Assembly: GCA_002104945.1 (NCBI GenBank)
Contig: MCFH01000044.1
Location: forward strand, 1 to 64,000
DNA length: 64,000 bases
Direction of reading: 5' to 3'
From: Piromyces finnis finn
Taxonomy: Eukaryota; Fungi; Neocallimastigomycota
The notes below the pieces were generated by a model. The model was not told the origin of the DNA, searched no databases, and saw only the letters and a program-made list of their open reading frames with translations. Made by a program: the position numbers and the translations under genes. Positions 1 through 63,122 of this stretch are shown here, piece after piece. Every line of letters starts with the position of its first letter. The stretch's first letter is position 1.

Positions 1-1109
1 TTTTAAATAGATTGATTTGTTATTATTATTATTAATATTATAGTTATTGCTGATATTTATTTAATAATTTTATTAACAAAAAGTTAAATATATAATTTAA
101 TAAATAAACTTAAAAATATATAAGAAGATTATATGTTTTTTTTATATATCCTATTCTAAATATATATTAAACATATATAATGTCGGTATTTGTTTGTTTG
201 TTATATATTTCTAAATGTAGTAATAAACATTTTTTTTATTTAACAGGAATACTAATAATGTTTGTTATATATTTCTAAATGTAGTAAAAAAAACAAACAT
301 TATTAGTATTCCTGTTAAATAAAAAAAATGTTTAAAAAAAAAAAAAGAAACAATACATAATACATCTGAAATTTGATATTTTAATAGTTTTAATATAGAA
401 TAACTTAATAAAAAATAAAAGTATATCTATTTAATAAATCATAATAATAATATAATAGTAATCAGCAATTATTGATATGCATAATAAATAAAAAAAAGCA
501 TTACTTAGTTATGTTATTCATTAATATAAAAAATATATAAATATAATAATTAAAACCACGCTTTTTTATATTTTTTATATAAAAATTAAAAAAAATAAAA
601 ATAAAAATTCACTTTTCATTTTTACCAAGGAGACTTTTTTTATATTAATTTTTTTTTATTTTCTACTTTAAAATTCACCCTTTTCCCCTTTTTTTATTAA
701 AAAAAACATTTATTAAATTTAAATAGTATTCACCAAAACATTATATTTTGAGTAAATAAATTAAATTTGGTTATGGATTTTTTCTTTCTTTTTTTTAATT
801 AACTTTCTCACCACCACAATTTTAAAAAAAAAAAATTGAGTAATTTCATTATATATACTATATAAAATTTATATATATGAATGAATAGAATATTAATATA
901 TTTATATATAATTTTATTTTAAATAAATAAACTTTTTACATAGATTATAAAAATAAATTATTTAAAGTGATTAATGTCAATGTTTCATATACAACTAATT
1001 TAAAAGAAAATTAATAAATGTAAATAGATATTTATACAATTATTTCTAGATAAAAATTGATTTTTTTATATTAATTGAATCATAAAAAATAGTGTTATAT
1101 ATTAATTTA

Positions 1110-2677
1110 TTAATTCCAAATCTTGGAACATTCGTCGCTAACTTTTTTACATGTTTCAGCATCCTTTCCTGATCCCCAACATTTAGAAACTTGACTGAAG
1201 CATAAATCAGATTTTTCAGATTTACATTGCCAGTCTTGTTTATCACATGAAAAATAGGAAGCATCAACAAGATTAACAGCACCTTGATTTGGTGGAGTAA
1301 TTGGTTCTGGTGGAGTAATTGGTTCTGGTGGAGTAATTGGTTCTGGTGGAGTAATTGGTTCTGGTGGAGTAATTGGTTCTGGTGGAGTAATTGGTTCTGG
1401 TGAAGTAATTGGTTCTGGTGGAGTAATTGGTTCTGGTGGAGTAATTGGTTCTGGTGGAGTAATTGGTTCTGGTGGAGTAATTGGTTCTGGTGGAGTAATT
1501 GGTTCTATAGTTGGTTCAGTAACACTTGGTTCTTCTTCTTCAACAATTTCAATAATATCTGATTCTGGAATAGAATAATTGTATTCACCTAATCCTCTCA
1601 TTAATCCTGTAACTAATTTTGGATAAGCAATCTTTAATTGGGAACGATCAATGATAGCAAAACGTTCTCCTTCTCCTTCAAAAATACCATTATCCCATAA
1701 AATACATGGAACTCCAATAGATTTGGCACTTTTAATGTAATATTCTGCCCATTTAGCACGTTCATCTTCATTATGACGATTCATAGCTCCAAATTCTCCT
1801 AAAATAACTGGAACGTTCTTGCTTATGAAGAATTTTTAATTTCTCCCATGGTACCGTCAATTTCACTAGCATCTTCAAAAGTACTAACTGCACCTTCTCC
1901 ATTATCTAATGCAAAACTGTATGGAGAATAGGCATGAATTGATACAATAACTTTATCATCATTTTCTGGATAGATAAAATGATCTGGTGCTCCTCCATAA
2001 GCTCCGGCTGCATATGGTGGAAGCATAAGATGACGAATGGCATTATTACCTCCTGAAGCACGAACTGTGTTGTAGAAAAGATTATCTAATTCATTAACGA
2101 AATCCCATCCTTCTTGATCTCCACCTGTCCATTCAACAGCATCACCAACCTTTCTTGGTTCATTCATACCTTCGAAAATTAAATGTTCATCGTAATTAGC
2201 AAATTCGGCTGCAATTTGTTTCCAAATGGCTTCTAATATCTCTTTAGCTGGTTCTAAGTTTTCAGCATAAGCATAGTTCCAATTTTCATGGTGAATATTT
2301 AAAATGGCAAAACTACCAGTGTTAAGAGCATAATCAACAACTTCGTGAACTCTCTTCATCCAAGCATCATCAATTTTATAATCTGGTCCTTCTCCAAAAT
2401 GTCCAGTCCAAGTTGTTGGAATACGGAAGATATTAAAACCTAATGAGTGTAACTTTTGGAAAAGTTCTGGTGTAGTCTTGACATTTCCCCAACAAGTTTC
2501 GGAAGCTAATTGATCTTCTGCATAATCTAAGGCATCTAAGCAATGAGCATCTAAAGTATTACCTAAATTCCAACCAATTTTAATTTCTTTAACAAGTTCT
2601 CTGGATGGAATATTTCTCATAGCCTTTGATGAAGCAAAAGCCAAGCACATCAAAGCAAAAGTATTTACGAATTTCAT
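1110..2677 (-). CDS. Secreted GH5 subfamily 4 endoglucanase (CelB-like) with Pro-rich linker and C-terminal 6-Cys module; one apparent frameshift at ~1833-1837
   Basis: Signal peptide MKFVNTFALMCLAFASSKA, GWNLGNTLDA, RIPTTW, LNIHHE and acid/base motif FEGMNEP in ORF 1823-2677. Adding one T to the T5 run at 1833-1837 gives ...IKKFFISKNVPVILGEFGAMNR (nucleophile motif GEFG), in frame with ORF 1110-1784. Confidence 0.93.
1291..1506 (-). repeat. 18-bp coding tandem repeat, 12 copies, encoding a (PPEPIT)n linker
   Basis: Unit ggtggagtaattggttct on the + strand, counted 12 times; copy 7 (1399-1416) has one substitution giving Ser. Confidence 0.97.
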
Positions 2678-3893
2678 TTTTCTTTTTTTATTAAAATATT
2701 AATCTAATATAATAAATATAAATCTTCTATATATAAATAAATAATTGTTTTTTTTTAAATATATACTTATATAATAAATTTACAAATTATATACAATTTT
2801 TATAATATTATAAAAATAATTTTTTTTATAAGAAAAAGCATTTTTTGTTGTATTTATATTATTTTTTAATCTATTTGCGGCATGTAATTATATAATAAAA
2901 AGTAATTATTATTTATTAATTAAAAATTAAAATATAATTATTTAATATTTTTTTTTAAAAAATTATGTATATTAATAATAAAATTTTTTTTATTCTTTAC
3001 TGACCGTTTTTAATTTAATATTTTACTTTTGGGTAAAAAGTAAACGGAAGGTGAAAAAAGAACTAATAGAAAAAAAGGAATAAAATATAATAATATGGAT
3101 AATTTATTGTAAAGATAAAATTAAGAAATAGATACCTAATTATTTATTAAAGAAATTGTTATATATTGCATATGTTGTTTTTATTGTGAAATATATTATA
3201 TAACTATTTGGATATACTTTAAATAGTTCTTTTAAAAAAATCATACTTTTAATAATTATATAATAATAATATATAATATGTATTTTTGTTTTGTATATGT
3301 GAAAATTTAAAAAAAGTAGATGAATAATTAAAGAATTTATTATCTTTAAAAAAAGAGTGATTTTATTATTGAATATACTTTTTGACTTAATAATAGAACC
3401 AATTAAAATTCCCTTTTTTAAATTTTATCACACTCATTTGATGCCCTTTTATTTAATATACAAATAAATAAAAAATAGTATAAAATTAAAATAGAAGAAT
3501 ATGGTTTGTGGAATTGGTACTACCAAATCATTTAATTCTTTTAAATCAAAATAAAATAGTAAAATAAAATAAAAAAAAAAAAAGATTATGCATAAAAGTA
3601 ACACAAGTTTAATTTAAATATAATTAAAATTATATTAATATGATATTTTAATTTAACCAAGAAAAGTCACGCTTTCCAACATCAATAGTAATTGAAATGA
3701 AACGAATTTAAAATTTGATCCTATTATATAATAATAAATTCATGTTTATTTATTTCCTTTTCTTATTATTTTTGAAATAAATCAAAAACATAATTTTTTT
3801 TTAAAAAAATACTTATTTTTCCATATGATGAAATGAAATTAACTAATAGTATTAAATGTTAATAAGTAATCTATTAATTATTATAATTCCAAC

Positions 3894-4062
<169 letters not shown>

Positions 4063-4338
4063 AAAATAATATTAATAATTATAATACAACTTTATTATAA
4101 AAATTCCTACGTACAGGAGTAATAATATTGATTTAAAATGTTTTATGATATGTATTAATAAAATAGCCATGATTAAGTATCTATTATACTATTATACTAT
4201 TATATATTATTAACTTTTGTTTATTATTATAATAAATATAATGTAATTTGCTATGTTCAGTATAAAAATTATAAATTTTAGTAAATACAGAGAACAAATA
4301 ACAATTATAAAGTATATTTTTGTTTAATATTAATATAA

Positions 4339-4500
<162 letters not shown>

Positions 4501-4628
4501 TTGTTTATTTATAAAATATTTAATAAATGAATTATTACAAAAATTTGAAATATATATATAACTCTAATATTTCTATGGATAATAATCTCTTATATGTTAT
4601 TTATTATTAAATATAAAAATATGATTTT

Positions 4629-6572
4629 TTATTTTCCTTTCGTCATTTTTTCATTTTTACTCTTCTTTTCTTTATTATGCTTGTCTTTTTTATTTTGTTT
4701 ACTCTTAATTGATTTTGATTTTTTATTTGACTTTTTATTTGATTTAGCTTTCTTTTTACCTTTATTTTCTTCTTTTTCACTATCATTTTCACTTTCACTG
4801 CCATCTTCACTATCATTATTAATATCAGTATGATCATTTATTTTATCCTCTTTTTCATTTACTTTTTTTACTTCTTTTTCTCCTTTTTCTTCATCTTCAT
4901 CATCTATTATTTTCACTTTTTCTTTTTCCCTTTTATTATCTTTATCCTCACTATTATTTCCACTTTTACTATCATCTTCACTATCACTATCATTTTCACT
5001 TTCACTGCCATCTTCACTTTCACTATTATTTTCATCTTCACTATCATTATTGATATCAGTATGAACATTTATTTTATCCTCTTTTTCATTTACTTTTTTT
5101 ACTTCTTTTTCTCCTTTTTCTTCATCATCATTATCTATTATTTTCTCTTTTTCTTTTTCCTTTTCTTTAATTTTTTTATTTTCTTCTTCTTCCTTGATTT
5201 CACTAATCTCTATAATATTATCAGAAGCAACAGCTTCATTATAATTTTTTAATACATTTATAATAGCATTGAAATTTGGTTTCTTTTTAAGATCATGATC
5301 TAAAAGACGAGTTTTGGTAGAATCTTTAGTGTAGAATCTATAGCCATCTTGTAAACCATAAACAGTGACACTAGAAATGTTATAACCATTTTTAATGTAA
5401 GATAAAAGTCTATTGAAGTACTCATAATATTGTTCTGCTTGAGCACCTAACCAATTATCACCTATTGGTGGAGTAATTGTTAATTCAGTAATTTGAATTT
5501 CTAATCCAGTAGAAGTAATTAACCTTTCTAAACCGTTAAAGTAATCATCTAAATTTGGCCAAGTAACTCCTATATAAGATTGCATACCAATACCATCAAT
5601 TAAGTTTTCTTGTTGTAAAATATTGGCAAGATCAATAATGGCTTGAGTTTTATCATGTGGTTGGATTTGGAAAGTATTATGATCATTATAAATTAACTTT
5701 ACATTAGGAAGGGCATATTTACGAGCAATACGGAATGCTATTGCAACATAATCAGGTCCAAATATTTCATACCAAGGATTTGGTGTTTTATTATTAGCAG
5801 TACGGGTATACCATCCAGTTGTTTCATCATATTGACCATCTGTAATTTCAATTGCTTCATTAACTACATCCCAAACATCTACTGTTCCTGGATAATTAAA
5901 TTGAACAAATCCAAGGAACTTACGAATATAACTATCTAAACGATACTCCATAACATCTCTACTAACAAATTCTGTATTGCTATAATATCCATCTCTAAAG
6001 AACCATTCTGGAACTTGAGTATGCCATACTAGAGCATGACCACGAATATTAAGTCCATTTTTATAGGCAAAATCTAAACCATCAACAATATTACTAAAAT
6101 TTAGAATAGGATCTTCATTACCATTCATAATATTATCAATAGAAGCTTGTTGATCTAAAATAGCACTTGGATTCATAAGATTAGTATAGGTCATTGAATT
6201 AAATTGATATTTAATAACTTTTCTCATTTTTTCAGATGTGATGGTGGACATGGCAAGATCATTACCATAGAGACCAACACCAAATCGAAATGGCGCTTCC
6301 TGTCCTAAGGAATCCCCATGAATTACATCTGAAATGTCACAATCAGCAGCTGGATCTACCATATCTTTTAATTTATAAACAGGTGTAGCAGGAGGTGGAA
6401 TATCATCAATTGGTCTTAAACTTTCTCCTAAACCACACCATTCACCATTTTCTTGACTCCATCCACCATCGTAAGTAGTACGAAGTGGCATTAGTGCCTC
6501 CTTACAACAAGGTATTCCAAATTTTTCAGACCAACATTCACCAGTGGTAGTTATATTTTGATTTATTATCAT
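4629..6572 (-). CDS. GH10-family protein A: single N-terminal fungal dockerin-like domain, GH10 barrel, long charged C-terminal tail; no signal peptide in the ORF
   Basis: Dockerin-like CWSEKFGIPCC...GWSQENGEWCGL; GH10 motifs RGHALVWH, WDVVNEA (acid/base Glu) and IQITEL (nucleophile Glu); ~190-aa E/D/K/S-rich tail. Confidence 0.9.
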   Translation of the reverse strand: MIINQNITTTGECWSEKFGIPCCKEALMPLRTTYDGGWSQENGEWCGLGESLRPIDDIPPPATPVYKLKDMVDPAADCDISDVIHGDSLGQEAPFRFGVGLYGNDLAMSTITSEKMRKVIKYQFNSMTYTNLMNPSAILDQQASIDNIMNGNEDPILNFSNIVDGLDFAYKNGLNIRGHALVWHTQVPEWFFRDGYYSNTEFVSRDVMEYRLDSYIRKFLGFVQFNYPGTVDVWDVVNEAIEITDGQYDETTGWYTRTANNKTPNPWYEIFGPDYVAIAFRIARKYALPNVKLIYNDHNTFQIQPHDKTQAIIDLANILQQENLIDGIGMQSYIGVTWPNLDDYFNGLERLITSTGLEIQITELTITPPIGDNWLGAQAEQYYEYFNRLLSYIKNGYNISSVTVYGLQDGYRFYTKDSTKTRLLDHDLKKKPNFNAIINVLKNYNEAVASDNIIEISEIKEEEENKKIKEKEKEKEKIIDNDDEEKGEKEVKKVNEKEDKINVHTDINNDSEDENNSESEDGSESENDSDSEDDSKSGNNSEDKDNKREKEKVKIIDDEDEEKGEKEVKKVNEKEDKINDHTDINNDSEDGSESENDSEKEENKGKKKAKSNKKSNKKSKSIKSKQNKKDKHNKEKKSKNEKMTKGK

Positions 6573-7211
6573 CCTTTATATTATTTTATATTAAAAAATT
6601 TAAAAAAAAAATTAAATAATATATTTTTTGTATTTATTTATATCTAATTATTTTAATACAAAATAAATATCATATATATGATGATTAATTATTTAAAAAT
6701 AAATAGATAATAATAATAAATAATAAATAATAATTCCTTTCTAACAAAATTTCATTTAAATCATTATACCTAATTAAAACTCAAATTATTTAATATTAAT
6801 TATTAATAATTTCTTTTACTATAATTATAATGTATGTACATTTCTACTTTGCCTATTTTTATAGGAAAATTATTTTCAAATTAATATTCATATTTTTTAA
6901 TTGATATTAAAAAGATGAAAGAATTTAAATTTTTTAGACCAATAATGTTTTTTAATAATTAATTTTATAGACTGGAATAATAATGTCTTACATCAATAAA
7001 CTTTAAATATTTTTCATAAAAAAAAAGGTAATTTTATTGTTACCTTTAAAAAAGTTGGTATAATTAATAATTATATAATATTAATGCATTAACATATTAA
7101 CGGTATTTTCTATAGAAAAAAAAAATTACAAGATATTTAATTTATTTTTATACTTTAATAAAAACAATAATAGATCAATACTTTTTGATTTTATTTTATA
7201 ATTCTATTTAG

Positions 7212-7212
<1 letters not shown>

Positions 7213-7286
<74 letters not shown>

Positions 7287-7295
7287 TAATTCTAT

Positions 7296-7326
<31 letters not shown>

Positions 7327-7330
7327 TTTT
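7213..7330. repeat. (TTTA)n microsatellite
   Basis: Tetranucleotide run with one interruption near 7288-7293. Confidence 0.95.
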
Positions 7331-8144
7331 ATTTTATTTTATTTTTATAGAATTTTATGTATTTTATACGACGTCTTACTGATATGACAATGTACAATAA
7401 TATACAATCACATCACATATTATATACAGGAGGTTAAATGAGGAAGTCTAAAAAAAATAATAATAATAAAGTAAATATTTCTATTTTTTCTTTTTTTAAT
7501 TTTTACATTATTTTATAAAATATATAAATAGAGTTATATCTTTTTCTATAATCAATTCTTTTCTTTTTTTTTTTAAATTTTAGTGTCTTGTTCGATTTAA
7601 TAACTTTTATTTATTAATGGAAAACAATTTTTTTTATTATTCATTAAAATAAAAAAAAAAAAATAAATAAATAATTTAGTCCTTTTTAATATCATTTTTA
7701 CTTTACTATGCTTTATGAAAAAACACGATAGTTAAATAAATATTTTTTAAATATTTATTTTATTTAAAAATAAAAAATATTGCACTCTTTTTTAAACTTT
7801 TTTTTTTTTTTTAAATAACTTTTTCTTTTATGTATATTTTATTTTTGATTTTTTTTTTTTCTTTTAAAATTTATTTTTTAATTTTATTTTTATTTTTTGT
7901 TTGTTTGTTTGTTTGTTTATATTATAATTTATATTAATTTTTTGTATAATTTAGTTAAATAAATAGTTTTCTATTATATTTTACATACATAATAATTTAT
8001 AAATATTATAATATTTATATTAATTATATATAAATATTTTATTTTATTTTTTCTATGAAAAAGGTTTGAATTAAATTTTTTATTTTAGGATAAAAAAAAG
8101 AAAACTTTTTAATTTTATTCTATTAGAGAGTGAATTTATTGTAT

Positions 8145-9638
8145 TTATTCTTCATCACTGTCATCATCAGCAGAATCTTCAGCAACATCAACATCAGCAT
8201 CAACTGAGATTTCTTCATCGCTTTCGATATTAGATTCATCATTAACTTCAGCATTGTAAGCCTTTAAAACTTCCATGATAGCTTCGTAAGTTGGCTTCTT
8301 TTGAAGTTCATGATCGAAGAGACGAGTTTTGGTAGAATCGGATTCATAGAATCTGTAACCATCTTGTAAACCGAAAACAGTAACACTAGTAATGTTAGCA
8401 CCATTCTTGTAGTTCTTCATAATAGTTTCCATCATCTTACGGTATTGGTAAACTTGAGTTTCTAACCAATCTTCACCATTAGTAGCATAAATAGTGAATT
8501 CAGTAATTTGAATTTCAAAACCTTCAGCAGCAAAACGTTGAAGAGCCTTATCGTAGTTAGCAACATTTTCTTCAAATGGTGGGTCAATTGGTTGAATGTA
8601 AGATTGCATACCAAGAGCATCAACTAAATCTTCCTTTTGTAAAATGTGCATAAGATCAATAATAGCTTGAGTTTTGTCATGTGGTTGTTGAGCAAAAGTA
8701 TCGTAATCGTTGTAAACTAACTTAACATTTGGAAGTGCGTATTTACGAGCAATACGGAAAGTTTTAACAACATAATCTGGACCAACAAAGTCATACCAGA
8801 TGTTTCTATCACCTTCATAAGTAATAGTACGAGTGTACCATCCAGTACTGTTATCGAATTTTCCTTCTAAAACTTCAACAGCTTCATTAACAACATCCCA
8901 AACATCAACAACACCTGGGTAGTTGTAGTTAACGAAACCGAGATATTGTTTAATATAGTTTTCTAAACGTTCGTAAATAACTTCTTCAGAAACGTATTCC
9001 TTAGCATCGTCAAATTCTTCTCTAAAGAACCAGTCTGGGAATTGCTTGTGCCAGACTAAAACGTGACCTCTAATATGAAGACCATTCTTTTGAGCATAAT
9101 CTAAACCATCAACAAATGGAGTAAAATTAAGAGCAATTTCATTACTACCATTCTTGAAGTTCTTTTGACAACCAGCTTGGTCAAGAACGAAAAGTGGTTT
9201 CATAAGGTTACTGTATGAGAATGAATTAAATTGGTATTTAACAAGTTCTCTCATAACCTTGGAAGAAGTAGTTGAGGTGGAAACAGCAGCACCATTGAAA
9301 CCAACACCAAAACGGAATGGAGCTTCTTGAGCTAAAGAATCACCAGTTATAACATTGGAAATATCACAATCAGCAGCTGGATCTACGACAGAATCAAGGT
9401 CAAGAAGAGCTGGTGGAGATGGTGGAATATCATCCTTTGGTCTAGTGCTTTCAGTTCCAAGACCACACCATTCACCATTTTCCATACCCCAGATACCATC
9501 ATAAGTGGTTCTAACAACTTCCTTAGTGGTTTGACAACATGGAATATTGAATTTTTCAGACCAGCAAGCGTTATCATGTGGTCTAGCTAAAGCAACAGCT
9601 GATAATGAACTTAATAATAAAATAGAATTGAATTTCAT
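8145..9638 (-). CDS. GH10-family protein B: signal peptide, single dockerin-like domain, GH10 barrel, short acidic tail; tandem paralog of 4629-6572
   Basis: Signal peptide MKFNSILLLSSLSAVALA; CWSEKFNIPCC...WGMENGEWCGL; RGHVLVWH, WDVVNEA, IQITEF; long stretches shared with paralog A (DPAADCDIS, APFRFGVG, QPHDKTQAIIDL, GLQDGYRFY). Confidence 0.93.
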   Translation of the reverse strand: MKFNSILLLSSLSAVALARPHDNACWSEKFNIPCCQTTKEVVRTTYDGIWGMENGEWCGLGTESTRPKDDIPPSPPALLDLDSVVDPAADCDISNVITGDSLAQEAPFRFGVGFNGAAVSTSTTSSKVMRELVKYQFNSFSYSNLMKPLFVLDQAGCQKNFKNGSNEIALNFTPFVDGLDYAQKNGLHIRGHVLVWHKQFPDWFFREEFDDAKEYVSEEVIYERLENYIKQYLGFVNYNYPGVVDVWDVVNEAVEVLEGKFDNSTGWYTRTITYEGDRNIWYDFVGPDYVVKTFRIARKYALPNVKLVYNDYDTFAQQPHDKTQAIIDLMHILQKEDLVDALGMQSYIQPIDPPFEENVANYDKALQRFAAEGFEIQITEFTIYATNGEDWLETQVYQYRKMMETIMKNYKNGANITSVTVFGLQDGYRFYESDSTKTRLFDHELQKKPTYEAIMEVLKAYNAEVNDESNIESDEEISVDADVDVAEDSADDDSDEE

Positions 9639-12600
9639 TTTGTCTTTAATTTTATTTTTATTTATATTGAAATTAGATTAATGTTTTAATTATTGTTGTT
9701 GTTTTATGTATAAATTTTTATTAATGTATTTTATTATTTGTTTTTACAGTTTTATTTTATATATATATTTTTTATTATATTTTTTTTATTTTTTTTTTAA
9801 AATATAAAAACTTCGGAAATTATTTAATTTATATACTTCACCTTTTTTTTTTTTTTTTTTCTGTTTCTTTTTTTAATTAATATTTAATTATATAGTAATT
9901 AATTGTGTATTCTTTGGAAATTAATTAATAACTTAAATCTCAATAAACAATAAGGAATAGTGGAACATAATATATAATAATATATATAATATATATTATT
10001 TAAACAATATTCAAAACTTTATTTAATAATAAAGGTTATATAATAAACTATTAAACAATATATGTGGTAAATAATTTATGTAAAAGAATATTAATACAAA
10101 TAATTTAAATTAACTTATAAGAATTATATTCAAACCTATCAATCATAAAGATAATGTACAATATATGTAGCATATTTTAATGTTTAAGAAATTTAAAATA
10201 GACACATTCAAAAATTCATATATTATAAAAAAACAATAAATATATTGTTCTTTTATAAATAATAAATGACTAACACAATTGCACTCATAATATAATTCTT
10301 ATTTAAATTTGTAAAATGATAAAGAATTATAAATACTTATATATTAATAATTAACGCTAATACTAAAAAGTTGTTGAGTTAATTATCTATTTCTTTTTCT
10401 TTAAATATTAAACATAATATTTCTATATACTTGCAAAAAAAGTAAATTTTTGTAATAAAAAAAAGTATCCCATTTAAGTCATCTAATCATTAAGGATGCC
10501 ATATTTATTTTAAATTAATTATTAATTATCCTTTCTGTGTAACCAAAAATGTTAAACTATATTTTTAATTTTTTTTTTTTTTAATATTTAATGTTTACTT
10601 TTATTATATATCAATTTACTCTAGGATACATTTTATGATTTTTTAGTAATTTTTATAATTGATTATCTATATATTAATTTGTATAATTATTTTGTACTAC
10701 CTTAAAGCGAAAAAAAAAATTCCTTTGAATTTTATTACCTATATAAAAAGGTCATTTTAAGTATAAAAATAAAATAATTTGTTTTTTAATTAATTAATTC
10801 AATAAAGTATGAAATGAAACGATTTGTTGATTAAATTATTGGTGGGTGAGTTTAAAACATGATACATTATTTATGTATATATATTGATATAAAATGAACA
10901 TAAAAACCTTTATAATATAATTGAATATTACTATAAATGTTATATAAACATAAATTAATGTAATATTAGAATAAACTATAATAGTTTTTTAGTACATCTT
11001 ATTTTGTACATTAATGTATTTATCATATTTTTATAATTATGTGATAAAGTATTTATAATAATTATTGTATTTAATATATAAACAGAAAAACAAACTTTAT
11101 AATTAGTGGCTTTAGTATAAATTAGTATAAAATAGAGTAAATTAGTCTCCATCTAAGAATATAACAGTTAGGAAAAGATATTCATACGATCATATAATAT
11201 TAAGTATGTATTTTAATAATTTATAAATAAAGTATATAAGTCATCCCACAAATCCTGAGTAAATTGAAACGAGTTATATCATATATTAATCATTAATGAT
11301 TTAGAAAATTAAAAGGTAATTTCTCTATGGAGACATTTTTGATCTTCCAAGTTATTCCAATATTTTATATTTTAAAACAAAAAAAAAGAATATGGATTTT
11401 AAATTAAAATAATATAAATAATTTTCTTTAAAATTTAAATATAAATAATAAAAACAATTATTATTAAGTAATAAGAATATATATATTTTTTATAATTTTT
11501 TTAAAGTTATTATTTTAAAGCATTTTTATTCATTTTCCTTTTTTTTTTATATTTCTGTTTTTAGCGGCTTTTTTAATATATTTAATTAAAATATGAATCT
11601 TTATTAATTAAAATAAAGTTAAAAAAATGATTCATATATAAATTTAAATAATAATAAACTTTATATTTTAATTAAAAAAGAATTTATAGAAAAAAGAAAC
11701 ATCCATTTTAAATATTTTAAATGGAAAGAAAAAATATAAAATTATATAATAAGCTATTTTTGTGATTTTAAATATATAAAAAAAACATACTTTTTTTTAA
11801 AATTTTATATTTAAATTTAAAAGTAAAAAATCTGTTTTAAAAAATGCGATAACTTCCAATAAAATAAATATAAAATAAAAATAAGTGCAAAATCTAAAAA
11901 GGTTATGTTATTTTTATTAATTTCTAGTCTGTTCATTGATTAATAAAAATAACATAACTTATTTAAAGTCATTTATATTTTGTTAATTATATAACATGCA
12001 AAAAAAAAAAAAAGATATTTTTATTTTATTATAATAAAATATATATAATTATTTCAATTTTATTCCTCTATAATTAATTTATAAAGTTTTTTCTATTTTT
12101 TTGGTTGTTGTGAAAATATAAATATGTCATAGTATATATTAATTTAAAAATAAAAAAGCAAAAACATAATTTTATAAATAAATATAAGGAATATAAGGAA
12201 TCATATAAAAGAATTAGTAAAAGTATTATTCAAAAATAATTTATAATTTAATAACATTATATTTTTGGTAATATTATTAAAATTACGATATCTCTAAAAT
12301 AAAACAAAAAATGAATTTTTATTTAATTCGTTGTGTTAATAGTGATAAAATAATTATTAATAAGTTTATTTATGTTCTCTTTATTACTTTTTTTTTATTA
12401 AACAAATTTAATATTTAAATATAAATTACTAAATAGAATTGAAAGTACATTTTGCATTATTCCTTAATTTCAAAAAATAATTATCATTTTAGTCTTTTAT
12501 TTAAGGATAAACTAATTTTTACATTTTTACATCATAATTCTAACCCTAAATAAAATAATTTTATTGTACATTATATTTGTGAAAATAAAATACATTCCAA

Positions 12601-13329
12601 AAATAATATTTTATGTATTTTTTATGTATTTGTATTTTATAAAATTATAAATTAATATTGTACTACATTTTTTGTTCTTTGGTTATTTTAAAAGTAAAAG
12701 ATTTAAGAAAGTTACAATATTTATATATAAAAAAATAAATATAAATAAATAAAAGATTATAAAAAAACCCAAATAATTTTATAAATAAATTTAAGTGTAA
12801 ATTAAATTTATCCTTGACATACATTATATTAATTTTACTAAATACGACATACAATACATAAAAATTTAATTAATAATATACTAAACGAAAAAGTTACATT
12901 GTAAATAATACGGTTATATAATGAGATGCTAAGTTATGTGATCACAAAGTAAAATAAAAGCTATCTCTAAAATACGTATAAAATACTCTTTTAATACATG
13001 TTTATGTTTTTATATTTTAATAATGTGAATCATAAATATATACTATATTAGAATAAAGGTATGTGTTAATAATAATTCACCATTTGAAATAATATAAATT
13101 TTTTAATTCTAACCCATTATTAATTAAATAAAAAAATTCATATGATTATTTATTTATTTAATTATCATATGAAATTAAAAAAAAATTTTTTATTCATCAA
13201 TCACACTTTTTAACATTCTTTAAATGAAGGCGTTCTTAGCGCCTTTTTTTTCTGTATTAACTAAACTAATAATTGGCTTTTTTATCTGTAAAATTTTTTT
13301 TTTTTTGTTTTCTAAAGAGTTTTCTATTT

Positions 13330-14120
<791 letters not shown>

Positions 14121-15403
14121 ACAATAATAAAAAGGCTTTCTAAATTCAAATTATTTATATCCTATTATGCCATCAATTTTTTTTTTCAAAAAACTTTATC
14201 TTTTAATTATCAAAATAAAGCATTTATTATAATTATATTAACTATTATTTATTATTATTTAGTTAAAATAAATAATAATTCAAGAATTGTCTTTTTCTAA
14301 AGACTATTATTGAATATAATTAAATAATTTTTTTGTATATCTTATAATGTAATTAAAATTTTTATTTTCGTGATAGTAACCAATTAAATTTTTTTTATTA
14401 ATATATTATATAAATTATACCAGTGTATAATAATTATTAATATATTTGAGAGGAAATGTGGAAAGAAATATTATAATAAAAGGATGATCCATATTATCAT
14501 TAAATATACTATATTGATATAATTTTTGACTTTTCATTTCATTAGAATTAGTAGGAACAAACTAAATATTAATATAGCTTCTAATTTTCATATTTCTATT
14601 ACAGTTTTTAAGATGATTACAAGAGAAAAGTTTTTTTTTTTTGTTTAATTTATAAACCGTAATAAAGAGTACTATTTTTTTTTTTAAATAAAATAAACAA
14701 TTTAATTGTATCAAAAAATATTAATTATTATTAAACTTTTAATATTATTCATTTAATATCTTTATATAAAACATAGAATATATAATAAAAAATTAATATA
14801 TGATTTTATGATATTTGCTTATACACAGTTTTTTTTTATAGAATTAACTTGAAAGTTTAACAATTTTATCATATGAATAAATAAATAAATTAAAAAAAAA
14901 GATTAAAGAAAAAAAAAAAGGAAACATAATTCATTAAAAAATTAAAAATAAAAAGGATAAAAAAAAAAAAAAAAAGCAAACCGAATTCTTTAGAATGTTA
15001 TTTTTATTATTGTAAATGGATTTAAGTTTTAATAAACTTTTTTTTTTTTTTTAAAAAAAATAGATTTAATTAAATTTACTATTATTATTATAAAATAAAA
15101 ATAAATTAAAGTATATGATTATTTGACCACAATACTAAGCAATCTACTGCCCATGCAATTTTTTTTTTTTTTTTTTGAATTATCCCTTTTTTTATTATAT
15201 TTAATAAATCATTTAATAAATCAATTAAAGTATATATTTTTATATTTATTTATTAAATCTTAATTTGAATTTAATCCTATAAAAGGAAAGAAAATTTTCT
15301 TCTTTTTTAAATCTTTGAAAATATTTTTATTACGAAATTAATAATAAATTTATATAAAAAATCATATTTTTTTTTCTAAAAATCAATAACATTAATAAAA
15401 AAA

Positions 15404-16910
<1,507 letters not shown>

Positions 16911-18165
16911 AAATAATTATATATAAATAATTTATTTATATATTATGTTTTGTTAATTAAAATCAAAATACATTTAACAATAACCATATAAAGAATGCTA
17001 TATTCTTTTTTATTTATAAAATCAATTTCCTTTGTTTTTATTCATTTTTATCGTTAAACAAAAAGTTTAAAAAGTAATAATAACCTATCATTTTTTTTAT
17101 AATTAAAAGAAAAAAAAATTAAAAATCATAAATATCTTTTTTTTATAATTATACATTTAATAATAAAAAAAACAACATAATTATCTCATTAACTATTATT
17201 TTATATAATAGTTTTTTTCGTATTAAATTAATAATAATGGAACAAAATCTATTTATATATATATAAATAAATAAATATATATAAATAAAGATTAAATATT
17301 ATATATTATATATATAGGAATAAATATATATATATAGGCATACATAAAAAATTAAATAAAAATAAAATTTAATGAACATTTAAAACAAAACAAAACAAAA
17401 AAAAAATGTTTAATGGCTAAAAATATTTAATCGTGTATTTTGTAGTTTTATATTTTTTTTAAAAGAAATTTTTATGTTTTGGTTTTTATTTTATTAAATT
17501 TTTTTTTTTTATTATGACAGATGTCTTTTGCTTTTTTTATTTTAGTCTGTTGTTTATAAAAAGGTATTTTTTTTCATTATTTGTTCAAAATATATTTTTT
17601 TAATGAAAATTTTTGAGGAAATTTTATTATTTTATTATAAGGTTTTCATAATAACTTGATATTTTGGTTTATTTTAAAAAATCTTGATTAAAGAAATATT
17701 TTAGTGATGATGATCTTTCTAAAAACTACAATGTATATAGTTTTTTTATAATCTTAAAAATACAAAATGCTTTACCAGAAAATCTCCCTTTTTAAAAAAT
17801 TTCCTGCCTAGAATTCTGCCAGTCACTTCTCTTCTGGCTAAAATTTTTGGCTAAATCCTTCAAAAATCTAGGATATATACATAGTTGTAATAGTGAAAAT
17901 TATTAGACTTGTTTTCAATTTTTCATTATTATTAACTATTTATAAATAACTTTCAGATTTACACATGATAATCATGTGCTCATGTGTTTTAATCAATATC
18001 ATAATATATAAAATAAATAGCAACAATTAATGATTAACCAATAATATTATTTATCTTTTTTTTTTTTTTTTTAATTTTGTAAAAATTTATAATATTGAAT
18101 ATTTGTCATAAAAAAAGAAATAATAGAAAAACTATATATAAATAGAAATAAAGTAGGAAAAAAAA

Positions 18166-18746
18166 ATGAGTACACAAGAAAAAAAACTGAAATTCAAAAA
18201 AAATGAAGAAATAAAGTAGAATTAACAGATGAATTATTATCACGTATTGCAATTAACGCAAGTCCATTACGTGAAGATGATGTTGAACTTGTTAAAAAAC
18301 AACTCGGACGTAAACCTCGTGGTTTAATTGCTATCGGTGCACGTTGTGCTTGTGGAAAGCCAGCTGTTACTATTACTTCACCACGTTTACCAGATGGTTC
18401 ACCATTTCCAACCTTCTTTTATTTATGTTTACCAGAACTTATTGTTGAAGTTTCTCGTTTAGAAGTAAAAAATATTATGAAAGAAATGACAAAGGAAATC
18501 GCAGCAGATGAAAATTTACGTGAAGCTCACCAAAAAGCTCATGACAGTTATATTCAACGTCGTAATTTACTTGGAGAAGTTCCAGAAATTGCTAATATTT
18601 CAGCAGGTGGAATGCCAACTCATGTAAAATGCTTACACTCACTTGTCGGTTACTCACTTGCAGCAGGTAAAGGTGTTTGTCCTATTGGTGATAAAGCTTT
18701 AGAAATGATGAATTGGGATACTTCTGTATGTCATTGTGAAGACTAA
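18166..18746 (+). CDS. DUF501-family protein (Rv1025-like, bacterial type), intronless; one apparent frameshift in the A-rich 5' end
   Basis: Reading upstream of ORF 18477 in the same frame gives DVELVKKQLGRKPRGLIAIGARCACGKPAVTITSPRLPDGSPFPTFFYLCLPELIVEVSRLE, then ISAGGMPTHVKCLHSLVGYSLAAGKGVCPIGD. These match the DUF501 motifs QLGR-PRG, RCxCG, PFPT, SAGGMP and VKCLH as I recall them. ATG at 18166 needs one extra base before ~18213. Confidence 0.88.
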
Positions 18747-19422
18747 ATTGAAACTATATACTAATCGACTGTTGCATACAAGAAATTCGACTATATATAT
18801 AAATATGAACTATATACCACAAAAAAAAAACACTTTTAAAAAGATTATTTATTATATATATATTTAATATATAAATCTTATGTACGCTCTAATCTTATAC
18901 AAGTTTACTTACGAATTGTACACTATAAATCTTAATATATAAAATAAAAAAAAATAATCATTAAATTTTAGAACAACTATAGATAATTTTATATTATTAT
19001 TTACATATTTACATTTTTTTTTTTATTCATTTAAAATTGAAAAAAATTATTATTATTATTATTATTATTTTTTTTTTCAAATATATTCATCATACATTTA
19101 TTTTCAGTACTATTTTTTTTTTCAAGTATTTTTCAAGGTATCCTTTTAAAAGATTTTTTTTAATTAAAAGTCAGAAGTGAGAACCACAAATAACAATAAC
19201 GAAAATAATAATTACAATAATAATAAAAAAAAGTGGTATTATACTTTTTTTCTAGAAATAATGTTAAATGTAAGATCTCTAATTTTATGTATAATTAGTA
19301 TTCATATTGAATAAATAAAATGAAAAAATTCAACTAAGTATTAAAAAGGTATCATAATTATCCTAAAAAAAAAGCAGATGATTCAGCCAACAAAAATTAT
19401 TATAGTGCATTTAGTCTATCAA

Positions 19423-20538
19423 TGATGCGTTGACCGATATATTTTTGAATAATATAAATTTTTGATAAATAATAAATTCTAATATTTATGATGAAACAAT
19501 AAATTTAAAATAAAATAAAATATGTTTTATAATTAACAAATAAATCACTCAAAAACTCGAAAATAAACTCTTTTTATTATGTTTAAATTATCTCTTTATT
19601 ATATTTATAATTTATTTATTGTCTATTTATGGTCTTTTTATTCTCTATTTATTGTCCGCCCTTATAAAGAAGAATTTTATCTTCCTTTTATACATTTTCA
19701 TTTATTACATGTATTATTATTTTTAACTATTAAATGTTATTATTACTATTGTTATTATTTATTAAAATTAAAAGAATAAATTAAAATTATGTCTTAGTAT
19801 TATAAAATATTATAGAATATTACTTATTTGATTTTCTTATTACTTCAAAATGTTTAAATTTAGAAAAATTATTATAAATTATCATTGACTATCATTAAAT
19901 GTATAATACCTTGAATAAAATAATTAAAATTTAAAATTAAAATAATATTAAAATAAAATTAAAATAAAATTAAAATAAAAATTGAAATAAAATTAATAAA
20001 ATCAAATATTAAAAGTATCAATTAATATAAACACATTTTATACAGAAACATAAAAGAGTTCTGTATTTTATCTTTAAAATTGTTTTATTGTTCTATTTCC
20101 AGGCTTTAAATTAATCACTTTTAGTAATAATTACTCAGTTATTATTTGTTAATTTATATATATAAGTTTGAAAGAATTTCTAAAGAACACTTGGATAAAC
20201 ACTAGAATTAATAATTTATGTATATCATTTTATTTTTTAGTTTATTTATTCATTTTTATTACTTATTATTATTTTTTATTTTAATACATTTTTGGATTGA
20301 GTGTTTTATTTTATTTAATAATTTATTTTATTATTATCTCTATTAAGTCATTTTTATTCATAATTTATTATTTAATAAAGAGAATATTATTTATTTAAAA
20401 GAAAGGGTTATATTCCATAAAATTATTATTTATTCATTTTTAAGGGTTATTATCTTTTATTTTTATTATAAGTCGCTATGGGTTAAGTCGTGTTTATTCG
20501 GCTAGTTTTTATTACGTTTTTATGTGAGTAGCGTATCA
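19423..20538 (-). mobile_element. LTR of left arm (~1116 bp)
   Basis: On the - strand it begins TGATACGC just after a purine tract (gtggggga, 20542-20550) and ends ...ACGCATCA; TG...CA termini with a short imperfect terminal inverted repeat. Confidence 0.8.
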
Positions 20539-20578
20539 AAGATCCCCCACTTAAGTTTGGACTTCGTCCCTGGAAGTC

Positions 20579-22085
20579 TCATTGTGCCAAGTATGATAAA
20601 TGAACTAAATTCTTTTGATGAACATTTCTTTCAGCTATTGCACCACTAATAGGGTCACATAATGTAGCAGTATTAAATTCCATTTTAATAATACGGAAAG
20701 GTCCCATGAAAAATGGATCTAACTTTCTTCTTGAAAAATTTCTAACAAGTACTAAATCACCAGCTGAGAATGCAGTATTCATTGAAGCTTTTTGTTTTCT
20801 TCTATTTTCCCATAATTTATTAGCATTCTGAATATTTTTGGTAACTTCAATAATCCATTCCCAATGTGTAGTAAATTTATTTATTAAATATTCTTCTGGA
20901 GTTTCGTATTCATTTTTATTATTATATTCTATCATAAGTTCAAATGGTTGAAGGTCAGTACGACCATATAATAATTCAAAACTAGAAAATTTTGTTACTT
21001 CATTTTTACAAGTACGTAGAGCCCATAGAGCAGATTGTAGAACTTCGTCCCATTCTTTATTTGAGTTTCCTAGTAGTCGAATATTTTTAACAATTTCTCT
21101 ATTACGATTTTCTACTTGCCCATTTGTTTCTGGGATGATAAGTGCTAGAATATTGAACATATATACCATATAAATCAAGGAAGCCTTTAGTAGCATCAGA
21201 AGTAAATTGTGGACCATTATCAGTAATTAATATTTCCGGGAGTACCATGTCTAGAAAATACATTTGTAAGAAATTTTATAACATCCGTAGATTCAATTGA
21301 CTTTAGTGGTTCAGCTTCAACCCATTTGGTAAAATAGTCTACAAGTACTATTATATATTTATTATTATTTTTAGTTATTGGTAGTGGTCCAATAATATCT
21401 AAACCAACTCTAGTGAATGGTAGACCTGGTTTTGTAGCAAATGATTCAGTACCACTATTAATAGTTGAGGTCTCTTTAATTGACAATCATGGCAAGTTTT
21501 TACAAGTAGTTCTACATCTTTAGACATATTTTTCCAATAATAATTTTCTTTAATCGGTTATAAGTTTTATAAAATCCTTCATGACCTATTGAATGTGCAG
21601 CTAATAGTAATTCTATTTTCTCTTCTTTATCTTCGACAACTTTTCTGATATTGTCACCATCTTTATAGTACTTTATTCCATTTATTAAGATAATTTTCTT
21701 TTTAAGAAAGTCTTTAATTTTATTACTTCCTGGATATTCATTAGAATTATTTTCACTGGTGGTACCAATAGATGTATCAGTTACTTCAGTTACAAGTACA
21801 GCTTCTAAGTCAGTATCATTATCTAATACTTCTTCTTTTTCATTTTCAAATGAAACGGAGGATATTTTTATTTTATTTTCTATATTAAAATAATTATTTT
21901 TATCAATATTAAAAATATTAGATGGTTCAAATGAATGAATTTTATTAAGATTATTATTATTGTGGATGTTAGAATATTAATAGTTAGTTGTAGTATTTTC
22001 ATTTAATTTAGGAAAATCATTTTTATTTATATCTATTTTATTATTTAAGTAGCAATGTTATTTAAGTCATTGATATCACTATTCT
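20579..22085 (-). pseudogene. Frameshifted Gypsy integrase (left arm)
   Basis: ORFs 21220-21486 and 20579-21217 are near-identical pieces of the right-arm integrase; single-base indels near 21470, 21235, 21135 and 20597. Confidence 0.9.
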
Positions 22086-22228
22086 TACTTATTATACATA
22101 CATATATATCAATAATTATTCATATTAATATATTCAATTTATTTCGATATTATTAAAATAATTATTTTAAAAATAATGAAATAAATGAATTATCTGAATA
22201 TGATAATGATATTGTTTATAATGAAGTA

Positions 22229-23719
22229 ATGAATAGTGATATCAATGTCTTAAATGATACTCGCAACTTAAATAATAAAATAGATATAAATAAAAATGAT
22301 TTTCCTAAATTAAATGAAAATATTACAACTAGTTATAATAATTCTAACATCCATAATAATCATAATAATATTCATTCATATGATCCATCTAATATTTTTA
22401 ATATTGATAAAAATAATTATTTTAATATAGAAAATAAAATAAAAACATCCTCAGTCCCATCTGAAAATGGAAAAGAAGAATTATTAGATAATGATACTGA
22501 CTCAGAAGCGGTTCTTGTAACTGACACATCTATTGATACTAGTGAAAATAATTCAAATGAATATCCAGGAAGTAATAAAATTAAAGAATTTCTTAAAAAG
22601 AAAATTATCTTAATAAATGGAATAAAATATTATAAAGATGGAGACAATATCAGAAAAGTTGTTGAAGATAAAGAAGAGAAAATAGAATTACTATTAGCTG
22701 CGCATTCAATAGGTCATGAAGGATTTTATAAAACTTATAATAGACTGAAGAAAAGTTATTATTGGAAAAATATGGCTAAAGATGTAGAACTACTTGTAAA
22801 AACTTGTCATGATTGTCAATTAAAGAGACCTCAACCTATTAATAGTGGTACTGAATCATTTGCTACAAAGCCAGGTCTACCATTCACTAGAGTTGGTTTA
22901 GATATTATTGGACCACTACCAATAACTAAAAATAATAATAAATATATAATAGTACTTGTAGACTATTTTACCAATTTTACCAAATGGGTTGAAGCTGAAC
23001 CTCTAAAATCAATTGAATCTACGGATGTTATAAAATTTCTTACAAATGTATTTTCTAGACATGGTACTCCAGAAATATTAATTACTGATAATGGTTCACA
23101 ATTTACTTCTGATGCTACTAAAGGCTTTCTTGATTTATATGGTATATATGTTCAATATTCTAGCACTTATCATCCAGAAACAAATGGACAAGTAGAAAAT
23201 CGTAACAGAGAAATTGTTAAAAATATTCGACTATTAGGAGACTCAAATAAAGAATGGGACGAAGTTCTTCCATCGGCTTTATGGGCTCTACGTACTTGTA
23301 AAAATGAAGTAACAAAATTTTCTAGCTTTGAATTATTATATGGTCGTACTGACCTTCAACCATTTGAACTTATGATAGAATATAATAATAAAAATGAATA
23401 TGAAACTCCAGAAGAATATTTAATAAATAAATTTACTACACATTGGGAATGGATTATTGAAGTTACCAAAAATATTCAGAATGCTAATAAATTATGGGAA
23501 AATAGAAGAAAACAAAAAGCTTCAATGAATACTGCATTTTCAGCCGGTGATTTAGTACTTGTTAGAAATTTTTCAAGAAGAAAGTTAGATCCATTTTTCA
23601 TGGGACCTTTCCGTATTATTAAAATGGAATTTAATACTGCTACATTATGTGACCCTATTAGTGGTGCAATAGCTGAAAGAAATGTTCATCAAAAGAATTT
23701 AGTTCATTATCATACTTAG
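22229..23719 (+). CDS. Ty3/Gypsy-type integrase (HHCC zinc finger, DDE core, GPF motif) with Asn-rich N-terminal region; no RT or RNase H
   Basis: HSIGH...CHDC; VGLDIIGP (D), ITDNGSQF (D), NGQVENRNR (E); GDLVLVRN...MGPFRI. Confidence 0.93.
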   Translation: MNSDINVLNDTRNLNNKIDINKNDFPKLNENITTSYNNSNIHNNHNNIHSYDPSNIFNIDKNNYFNIENKIKTSSVPSENGKEELLDNDTDSEAVLVTDTSIDTSENNSNEYPGSNKIKEFLKKKIILINGIKYYKDGDNIRKVVEDKEEKIELLLAAHSIGHEGFYKTYNRLKKSYYWKNMAKDVELLVKTCHDCQLKRPQPINSGTESFATKPGLPFTRVGLDIIGPLPITKNNNKYIIVLVDYFTNFTKWVEAEPLKSIESTDVIKFLTNVFSRHGTPEILITDNGSQFTSDATKGFLDLYGIYVQYSSTYHPETNGQVENRNREIVKNIRLLGDSNKEWDEVLPSALWALRTCKNEVTKFSSFELLYGRTDLQPFELMIEYNNKNEYETPEEYLINKFTTHWEWIIEVTKNIQNANKLWENRRKQKASMNTAFSAGDLVLVRNFSRRKLDPFFMGPFRIIKMEFNTATLCDPISGAIAERNVHQKNLVHYHT

Positions 23720-23753
23720 CACAATGAGACTTCCAGGGACGAAGTCCAAACTC

Positions 23754-23763
23754 AAGTGGGGGA
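23754..23763 (+). other. Polypurine tract preceding the 3' LTR
   Basis: aagtggggga lies 3 nt before the LTR start TG at 23767; a mirror copy lies at 20542-20550. Confidence 0.75.
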
Positions 23764-23766
23764 TTT

Positions 23767-24881
23767 TGATACGCTACTCACATAAAAACATGATAAAAAC
23801 TAGCTTAATAAACACGACTTAACCCATAGTAACTTATAATAAAAATAAACAATAATAACCCTTAAAGATGAATGAATAATAATTTTATGAAAATATAACC
23901 CTTTCTTTAAATAAATAATATTATCTTTATTATATAATAAATTCTGAGTAAAAACGACCTAATAGTGATAATAATAAAATAAATTATTAAATAAAATAAA
24001 TTATTAAATAAAATAAAACGACTTAATCCAATAATGTACTAAAATAATAAAATAATAATAAATAAATAAAAATGAATAAATAAACTAAAAATAAAATGGT
24101 ATACATCAAATTATTAATTCTAGTGTTTATCCAAGTGTTCTTTAGAAATTCTCTTAAACTTATAAATTAATAAATAACTAATTGAGTAATTATTACTAAA
24201 ATGATAAACTTAAAACCTGGAAATAGAACAATAATAACAATTCCAAAGATAAAATACAGAACTCTTTTATGTTTCTGTATAAAATGAGTGTTTATAATAA
24301 TTGATACTTTTAATATTTTAATTTTGTTAAATTTTTATTTTAATTTTATTTTAATTTTATTTTAATATTATTTTAATTTTAAATTTTAATTATTTTATTC
24401 AAGGTATTATACATTTAATGATAGTCAATGATAATTTATAATAATTTTTCTAAATTTAAACATTTTGAAGTAATAAGAAAATCAAATAAGTAATATTCTA
24501 TAATATTTTATAATACTAAGACATAATTTTAATTTATTCTTTTAATTTTAATAAATAATAACAATAGTAATAATAACATTTAATAGTTAAAAATAATAAT
24601 ACATGTAATAAATGAAAATGTATAAAAGGAAGATAAAATTCTTCTTTATAAAGGGCGTACAATAAATAAGAGAATAAAAAAAAAACAATAAATAGATAAT
24701 AAATAAATTATAAAATATAATAAAGATTTAAGAGTTTATTTTCGAGTTTTGAGTGATTTATTTGTTAATTATAAAACATATTTTTATTTTATTTTAAATT
24801 TATTGTTTCATCATAATAATATAGAGTTTATTATTTATTAAAAACATTATATTATTCAAAAATATATCGGTCAACGCATCA
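23767..24881 (+). mobile_element. LTR of right arm (~1115 bp)
   Basis: Starts TGATACGCTACTC and ends CAACGCATCA; alignable over its length to the reverse complement of 19423-20538. Confidence 0.8.

Positions 24882-32964: not shown

Positions 32965-32967
<3 letters not shown>

Positions 32968-33019
<52 letters not shown>
32968..33019. repeat. (TAT)n microsatellite
   Basis: Short pure trinucleotide run. Confidence 0.9.

Positions 33020-33573: not shown

Positions 33574-33608
<35 letters not shown>

Positions 33609-63074: not shown

Positions 63075-63122
<48 letters not shown>

Follow-up and report, generated by a model that had tools for sequence, protein, structure and literature searches.

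Here, we examined a 64,000-nucleotide stretch of the genome of the anaerobic gut fungus Piromyces finnis (assembly GCA_002104945.1, contig MCFH01000044.1, positions 1 to 64,000 of the forward strand; hereafter, the window), in which a gene encoding a protein of the DUF501 family (PF04417) was observed. The GC content of the window ranges from 5 to 36% per kb, and its genes encode a GH5 protein, two GH10 proteins with CBM10 domains, a carboxylesterase, a retrotransposon integrase, and a trehalose-phosphate synthase/phosphatase. The near neighbours of the DUF501 gene are GH10/CBM10 and carboxylesterase genes and a Gypsy element, and no eno-divIC-DUF501-ppx neighbourhood surrounds it; that gene order is typical of actinobacterial members without being a defining feature of the protein family. 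Membership in the DUF501 family, which a first-pass annotation of this DNA had proposed, was confirmed by a match to the full PF04417 profile (positions 2-139 of 139, 121.3 bits versus a gathering cut-off of 23.8, E = 3.8e-35), and a scan of the protein against NCBIfam matched no family. The RCxCG, SRLE, SAGGMP, KCLH, and C-terminal CHC motifs of the DUF501 frame were all found at the positions claimed by that annotation (Table 1).

Table 1. Coordinates of the DUF501 gene, its motifs, and the associated features of the contig end in the window.
Feature	Position	Strand	Remarks
DUF501 gene	18166..18746	+	ATG 18166-18168, stop 18744-18746; 581 nt, frameshifted near the 5' end
Uninterrupted DUF501 frame, 179 aa	18207..18743	+	PF04417 domain = residues 44-166 of the translation
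Cys62-x-Cys64 of RCxCG	18345..18353	+	Cys codons 18345-18347 and 18351-18353; near-invariant in the subfamily
Glu101 codon, SRLE	18462..18464	+	Invariant column; equivalent to Glu59 of Rv1025; triad member
Cys157-Leu-His159, KCLH	18630..18638	+	Cys 18630-18632, His 18636-18638; invariant; equivalent to Cys113 and His115 of Rv1025
Cys190-His-Cys192, C-terminal CHC	18729..18737	+	Both cysteines at least 90% conserved in bacterial relatives too
A-rich error stretch	18178..18212	+	Single A's missing after 18178, 18189, 18195, and 18212; 18183 A, not G
Unsupported 47-nt 'intron'	18170..18216	+	Inferred from the public 177-aa model ORX44629.1 (starts MIELTDE); bridges the assembly frameshift
Transcript-like contigs X2-X4, unspliced	18124..18822	+	Length about 700 nt; 5' untranslated region (UTR) about 42 nt, 3'UTR about 76 nt; exact ends not provable
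Duplicate of C171, about 268228-290432 (minus strand)	1..22134	.	Ends inside a multi-copy Gypsy palindrome at the contig start

The first-pass annotation had also described a full-length frame of about 190 residues. This description holds for the gene, as the full PF04417 domain is present and an intact frame of 194 codons exists elsewhere in the genome, but not for the interval 18166-18746, which is not one open frame. The frame opened by the ATG at 18166 runs for 17 codons before a stop, and relative to it the DUF501 frame is shifted by one base; because of this break, the list of open reading frames (ORFs) holds only the last 89 residues (18477-18746), as had been remarked earlier. The true coding sequence comprises 585 nt (194 codons and a stop) without an intron. 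A second DUF501 copy of the same genome, on contig C171 (271662-272192, minus strand), has an open frame, and the intact ORF there (L002:1498-2082, minus strand) is identical to the public P. finnis protein ORX44854.1. In an alignment with the window, the C171 copy shows four additional single A's and, at one position, G in place of A within the stretch 18178-18212, and the net effect of these errors is a one-base shift. Exactly the C171 version is carried by contigs from public short-read runs of the same organism, namely X1, assembled from DNA, and X2 and X3, which were assembled from probable RNA runs; these three contigs agree with C171 also at every other indel up to 18980. Over the approximately 19.7 kb compared, 102 indel events but just 15 substitutions separate the window from the C171 copy; 70 of the indels lie in homopolymers, and 71 represent bases missing in the window. 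No long near-identical match on C171 was found for the window intervals 28000-34000 and 58000-64000. Because an indel-rich and substitution-poor difference is the pattern of long-read consensus errors and not that of diverged paralogues, we attribute the broken frame to an error of the long-read assembly in a redundant contig end of 22 kb and do not regard the gene as a pseudogene. The two annotated P. finnis DUF501 genes are probably one locus.

The public model ORX44629.1 sits on a 471-kb scaffold, which was taken as that of the window, and its MIELTDE start requires positions 18170-18216 to be spliced out. A short spliceosomal intron was considered as the cause of the frame break and rejected, as X2 and X3 run colinear through the stretch without a joint. 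Since these contigs are uninterrupted, and since the codons cut out with 18170-18216 align with the N-termini of orthologues, this intron is a modelling artefact. Thus, the public record can be corrected: the 177-aa ORX44629.1 rests on a frameshift and a false 47-nt intron, and the 194-aa ORX44854.1 is the correct protein.

The composition and surroundings of the gene are those of the fungal genome. The GC content at third codon positions (GC3) is 0.12 in the P. finnis gene and 0.09-0.20 in fungal DUF501 genes overall, compared with 0.53-0.66 in the nearest bacterial genes; the value of 0.12 falls in the range of the neighbouring fungal genes of the window (0.11-0.23), and the flanks contain 16-17% GC, so that the host-like codons and AT-rich fungal flanks reported in the first-pass annotation were both recovered. 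The continuity of the locus, for which that annotation had recommended a check, was supported by the independent short-read contig X1 (18089-19035), which joins the gene to AT-rich DNA 77 nt upstream and 290 nt downstream. Fungal DUF501 genes are surrounded by eukaryotic genes in four species. In Anaeromyces robustus and Piromyces sp. E2 the loci are single-exon, with FLYWCH, ricin-type lectin, CAP/chitin-binding, and subtilase genes as neighbours, and no conserved synteny around the orthologues was observed when the window and these two loci were compared.

Expression and selection were also observed. Gene-sized contigs were present in three probable RNA runs from two studies (X2, 18124-18822; X3, 18125-18820; X4, 18231-18813), and these runs contain no other long piece on the flanks, whereas the DNA run X1 covers the flanks. 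The P. finnis contigs fit an unspliced mRNA of about 700 nt, and their colinearity, together with the single-exon loci of the orthologues, agrees with the intronless coding sequence noted earlier. In A. robustus, RNA contigs from two independent runs match the genome as three separate blocks and skip two canonical GT-AG introns (170 and 96 nt, 7-9% GC) that lie entirely in the 5'UTR (L012:9376-9693, MCFG01000348.1); no such upstream exons were seen in the transcript-like contigs of P. finnis. This splicing shows eukaryotic transcription and processing of the gene. In addition, the ratio of nonsynonymous to synonymous substitution rates (dN/dS) among four fungal sequences was 0.17-0.21 (pairwise Nei-Gojobori), indicating purifying selection, with dS values of 0.5-1.4 that are approximate owing to strong codon bias.

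To place the gene among its relatives, a word-indexed search of 5.8 billion proteins was used, which returned 1,698 matches, the best 120 of which provided the names and the tree. Among these 120, the top named matches are gut-fungal DUF501 proteins at 81-99% identity (A. robustus 85%, Pecoramyces/Orpinomyces 82%, and Piromyces sp. E2 81%, the last of which shares a 90% cluster with Neocallimastix californiae, N. lanati, and Neocallimastix sp.), followed by Actinomycetaceae at 57-72%. The bacterial matches include contigs at up to 72%, the metagenome-assembled genome (MAG) RGIG7097 at 70% (Actinomycetaceae from water-buffalo abomasum, MBR6459144.1), and Ancrocorticia, Actinobaculum, and Arcanobacterium at 57-65%; identity is approximately 50-55% to Microbacteriaceae and 40% to other Actinomycetota. 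The contig of the 72% relative is bacterial; there, the end of divIC and the DUF501 gene overlap, with a Ppx-GppA gene at a distance of 700 nt, which is in part the bacterial context that had been claimed for the family. No fungus outside Neocallimastigomycota was present among the named matches in the best 120 of 1,698, which is not an exhaustive fungal survey. Within the gut fungi, the statement that DUF501 is not known from fungi had to be abandoned, as proteins labelled DUF501-domain-containing already stand in the public annotation of P. finnis, A. robustus, and Neocallimastix, annotated orthologues exist in Pecoramyces and Piromyces sp. E2 as well, and the family is annotated in at least six gut-fungal genomes.

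In a maximum-likelihood tree (LG+C20, 47 rows, 187 columns, rooted on Microbacteriaceae; the rows are a subset of the 120 without eight near-duplicates and most Microbacteriaceae rows), the five fungal sequences form one clade with support of 100/100, and the sister of this clade is the ruminant-gut Actinomycetaceae group of P0006, P0007, and RGIG7097 (98/98). The fungi and their sister are placed inside an 11-row clade (100/98), which in turn lies inside an Actinomycetaceae-type clade (100/98), and a quick tree of all 120 rows gives the same picture. From these sequence relationships, the donor can safely be placed in the Actinomycetaceae lineage. Because one clade is common to all four fungal genera, the transfer is older than their split; for the gut-fungal crown, an age of approximately 66 Mya has been given (PMC6712302). 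Both the sister group and the fungal-like GC3 support the ameliorated horizontal acquisition from Actinobacteria that the first-pass annotation had suggested. As a separate observation, a gut-fungal-type orthologue, P0003 (288 aa; L016:170-1036, Joint Genome Institute (JGI) metagenome 3300020079, and L017), is the first branch of the fungal clade and has a repetitive, Lys/Glu-rich C-terminal tail of approximately 95 residues that is absent from the other fungal orthologues.

The protein itself has preserved the bacterial core. In an alignment of 61 mostly bacterial sequences, the fungal protein keeps 33 of 33 invariant and 28 of 28 near-invariant columns; the columns of E101, C157, and H159 are invariant, and each of the five fungal sequences has all three residues, and C62, C64, W185, C190, and C192 are each at least 90% conserved. 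The C-terminal CHC motif had been regarded as a fungal addition, and this is contradicted by the conservation of W185, C190, and C192 in the mostly bacterial alignment, because of which the CxC is considered to be inherited from bacteria. The only part new in the fungi is an N-terminal extension of approximately 15-18 residues, rich in Lys, Glu, and Asn, which is predicted to be disordered (predicted local distance difference test, pLDDT, 55-64; residues 1-20 at low confidence), and because it has no hydrophobic or arginine-rich character, a cytosolic location appears probable. The AlphaFold2 model is otherwise confident (pLDDT 92.9, predicted template modelling score, pTM, 0.86). Feature and fold searches of the ESM Atlas returned DUF501 clusters only, with a template modelling (TM) score of 0.83-0.90 over 171 residues to one of them, and no solved structural relative was found with Foldseek against the PDB (best E = 3), with VIA-align over 48,161 chains (best Z = 2.7), or in a profile search of PDB sequences, which gave nothing meaningful (E >= 0.08). 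A fold without a solved relative was likewise described for DUF501 in a computational preprint (10.64898/2026.08.31.746906), in which Glu59, Cys113, and His115 of Rv1025 are proposed to form a mononuclear, solvent-open metal site and AlphaFold-Multimer predicted no complex with DivIC. Finally, a six-frame profile search of the fungal genome detected neither DivIC (PF04977) nor Ppx-GppA (PF02541), and the control genomes were positive.

Taken as a whole, these results make it very probable that DUF501 was acquired once, from a gut bacterium of the Actinomycetaceae lineage, by an ancestor of the mammalian gut fungi and has been kept as a working gene. Several points weigh against this reading or restrict it. 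An approximately unbiased (AU) test keeps a tree in which all 34 Actinomycetaceae-type bacterial sequences exclude the fungi (delta lnL 11.9, p = 0.19); with this value on 187 columns, nesting within the crown of Actinomycetaceae is therefore not proven, and the donor may be a stem and not a crown member of the lineage. The amino-acid composition of the fungal sequences is deviant. The basis for the absence from other fungi is the named matches among the best 120 and the taxon list of the preprint, the assignment of X2-X4 to RNA is a guess, contigs cannot prove transcript ends or exclude a minor variant, and DivIC and Ppx-GppA genes that are diverged or rich in introns could have escaped the six-frame search.

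Other explanations account less well for the same data. The window copy might be a real second paralogue, decayed to a 5'-frameshifted pseudogene or an N-terminally truncated gene, with the intact gene on C171. The two assembly loci (C172:18207-18743 and C171:271662-272192) are on large scaffolds (471 kb and 479 kb), and contig-based read data lose rare variants, so that the absence of the window version is not provable from them; however, the window and the C171 protein are 100% identical over residues 3-179 of the DUF501 frame, all differences between the window and the reads correspond to the C171 version, the copies differ mostly by homopolymer indels with few substitutions, and the duplicate terminates in a multi-copy Gypsy repeat at the contig start, all of which renders a paralogue improbable. 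Bacterial contamination or a chimeric assembly join, which would mean that the gene is not fungal, could be suspected from the 70-72% identity to gut Actinomycetaceae proteins and from the intronless coding sequence. The low GC3 compared with that of the bacteria, the linkage by X1 to AT-rich flanks on both sides, the orthologues with eukaryotic neighbours in the fungal scaffolds of four other species, the Anaeromyces mRNA with spliceosomal introns in its 5'UTR, and the lack of bacterial neighbour genes are inconsistent with either possibility. Both are effectively refuted and excluded for practical purposes, with almost no probability left to them. Ancient eukaryotic DUF501 inherited by vertical descent, or a transfer from fungus to bacterium, deserves consideration in that the family is not limited to bacteria: InterPro holds 179 eukaryotic entries, essentially from protists (apicomplexans, stramenopiles, and Naegleria), which average 30% identity to Rv1025 (10.64898/2026.08.31.746906), and the AU test does not fix where the fungi branch relative to the Actinomycetaceae clade that was sampled. 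Against such protist values, the fungal proteins show 57-72% identity to Actinomycetaceae, the fungi branch in the Actinomycetaceae part of the Microbacteriaceae-rooted tree with support of 98-100, their bacterial sisters are in the canonical divIC-DUF501 operon, and the best named matches (best 120 of 1,698) include only fungi of Neocallimastigomycota; vertical descent or reverse transfer is thus very improbable.

Several side observations concern the contig end. The first 22 kb are probably one locus assembled twice, and the join at the Gypsy repeat is doubtful; the genes in 1-22134, including the GH5, GH10, and carboxylesterase genes, are likely counted twice in the public annotation. Positions 19421-24883 contain two copies of a repeat of approximately 2.7 kb, inverted and 92% alike, and the duplication shared by C171 and C172 ends inside this repeat; dozens of copies of this repeat occur in the genome at 90-100% identity, with an integrase ORF at 22229-23719. 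The carboxylesterase gene (PF00135) is broken up into three consecutive ORFs of the plus strand (15404-15892, 15883-16293, and 16380-16910), and introns or further assembly frameshifts may be the cause. In the interval 13000-14000, the GC content falls to 5%, 29 of the copy-to-copy indels are found, and the consensus can be trusted least; the long ORFs with TTG starts at 13324-14149 are probably meaningless.

Concerning function, the first-pass annotation had pointed to the retention of the gene without its operon as a clue, and the lack of any DivIC or Ppx-GppA match in the fungal genome agrees with this view. Because the core is under purifying selection and the partners were undetected, the activity of the protein would not require DivIC/FtsB, Ppx-GppA, or the bacterial divisome, and this independence fits the lack of a predicted DivIC complex in the preprint (10.64898/2026.08.31.746906). 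The conserved Glu101, Cys157, and His159 are consistent with putative metal binding, and a stand-alone metal-dependent enzyme that might act on a small substrate common to bacteria and fungi is favoured. That the substrate may be phosphorylated, e.g. polyphosphate or a nucleotide, is a guess of at best rather low probability, made because of the ppx neighbourhood in bacteria and of an ESM Atlas cluster combining DUF501 with a Ppx-GppA domain. This cluster contains 87 actinobacterial proteins of approximately 355 aa; it may represent a true fusion linking both functions or a run-through of overlapping genes. Therefore, we hypothesize, tentatively and at somewhat less than even chances, that DUF501 might catalyse a metal-dependent housekeeping reaction that needs no partner, on a substrate found in both bacteria and eukaryotes and perhaps in the metabolism of polyphosphate or nucleotides, and that its link with cell division in Actinobacteria might be one of gene order only.

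The main alternative to an enzyme, although a rather unlikely one, is a structural-metal or redox-sensing role, in which the Cys, His, and Glu residues, together with RCxCG and CxC, would hold a structural zinc, an Fe-S, or a redox-sensing centre and the fungi would have co-opted a binding or regulatory factor. The four additional cysteines (C62, C64, C190, and C192), conserved to at least 90% in the subfamily, the lack of any relative with a catalytic fold in the structure and sequence searches of the PDB, and the fusions of FtsB with DUF501 in the annotation of Mycobacterium smegmatis (PMC9846249) are in line with such a role. However, the holo models of the preprint show open coordination positions at the triad, which are more typical of a catalytic site, AlphaFold-Multimer found no DivIC complex, and the whole core is conserved in a fungus without the candidate bacterial partners.

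Herein, we propose the following sequence of events, in which an enzyme is preferred. The common ancestor of the mammalian anaerobic gut fungi would have taken up DUF501 once from a gut bacterium of the Actinomycetaceae lineage, and the acquired gene has been recoded to fungal codon usage and lies among fungal genes. It is expressed as a short monocistronic mRNA, the Anaeromyces form of which carries two spliced 5'UTR introns, and purifying selection has kept it in Piromyces, Anaeromyces, Pecoramyces, and Neocallimastix. The product would be a soluble, cytosolic, single-domain protein of approximately 22 kDa, in which the triad of Glu101, Cys157, and His159 would hold one catalytic divalent metal, as suggested by the computational preprint (10.64898/2026.08.31.746906). 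The enzyme would act without operon partners on a small cytoplasmic substrate, perhaps a phosphorylated one, that bacteria and fungi share.

Many transfers of genes from gut bacteria to anaerobic gut fungi are on record, and one more case is unsurprising and fairly ordinary. DUF501 is special in that it is essential in Mycobacterium and Corynebacterium, with function and fold unsolved, and has been proposed as a drug target; the essentiality has been reported for Corynebacterium diphtheriae, C. glutamicum, and M. tuberculosis (PMC10166564). To date, functional hints on the family have come only from its operon (divIC, ppx). The retention of a complete core under selection without these partners argues for a stand-alone activity, narrows the hypotheses, and gives a test system. 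If the proposal is true, the gut-fungal orthologue, which has been kept for tens of millions of years in cells that have neither FtsB nor peptidoglycan nor Ppx-GppA, is a stripped-down system and might provide a route to the function of an essential protein of M. tuberculosis. A literature search pairing DUF501 with fungi found no relevant paper; neither DUF501 nor PF04417 is mentioned in the searched text and supplements of Murphy 2019 (bioRxiv), Ciach 2024, Pratt 2024, and Wang 2019, and the preprint passage on eukaryotic members (10.64898/2026.08.31.746906) does not mention the gut-fungal genes.

Compared with Rv1025 of M. tuberculosis, cgp_1113 of C. glutamicum, and DIP0919 of C. diphtheriae, the fungal protein has the same full-length domain, triad, and invariant columns. 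Its size is similar to that of the actinobacterial DUF501 proteins (approximately 155-200 aa), and no solved fold relative exists for either. In contrast with the actinobacterial genes, the fungal gene is monocistronic, is located on a eukaryotic chromosome with fungal codons and UTRs, and stands outside an eno-divIC-DUF501-ppx neighbourhood in a host that shows no DivIC or Ppx-GppA, and an N-terminal extension has been added. The ruminant-gut Actinomycetaceae proteins (RGIG7097, P0006, and P0007) are closest, with 68-72% identity and with RCxCG, SRLE, SAGGMP, KCLH, and CxC in common, whereas their genes show GC3 values of 0.53-0.66, the start codon overlaps divIC, and Ppx-GppA is close by. 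The case resembles the other transfers described in Neocallimastigomycota (Murphy et al., 10.1101/487215) in its gut-bacterial donor, intronless and ameliorated sequence, expression, and conservation across genera. However, most of those genes have assignable roles in carbohydrate breakdown or anaerobic metabolism, whereas DUF501 is uncharacterised and is essential in the donor phylum. The protist DUF501 proteins (10.64898/2026.08.31.746906) show approximately 30% identity to Rv1025, are often part of larger proteins, and in some cases do not have the Cys-His pair, whereas the proteins of the gut fungi stand alone, have an intact triad, and are approximately 70% identical to those of Actinomycetaceae. 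These features point to an acquisition by the gut fungi that was separate and much later.

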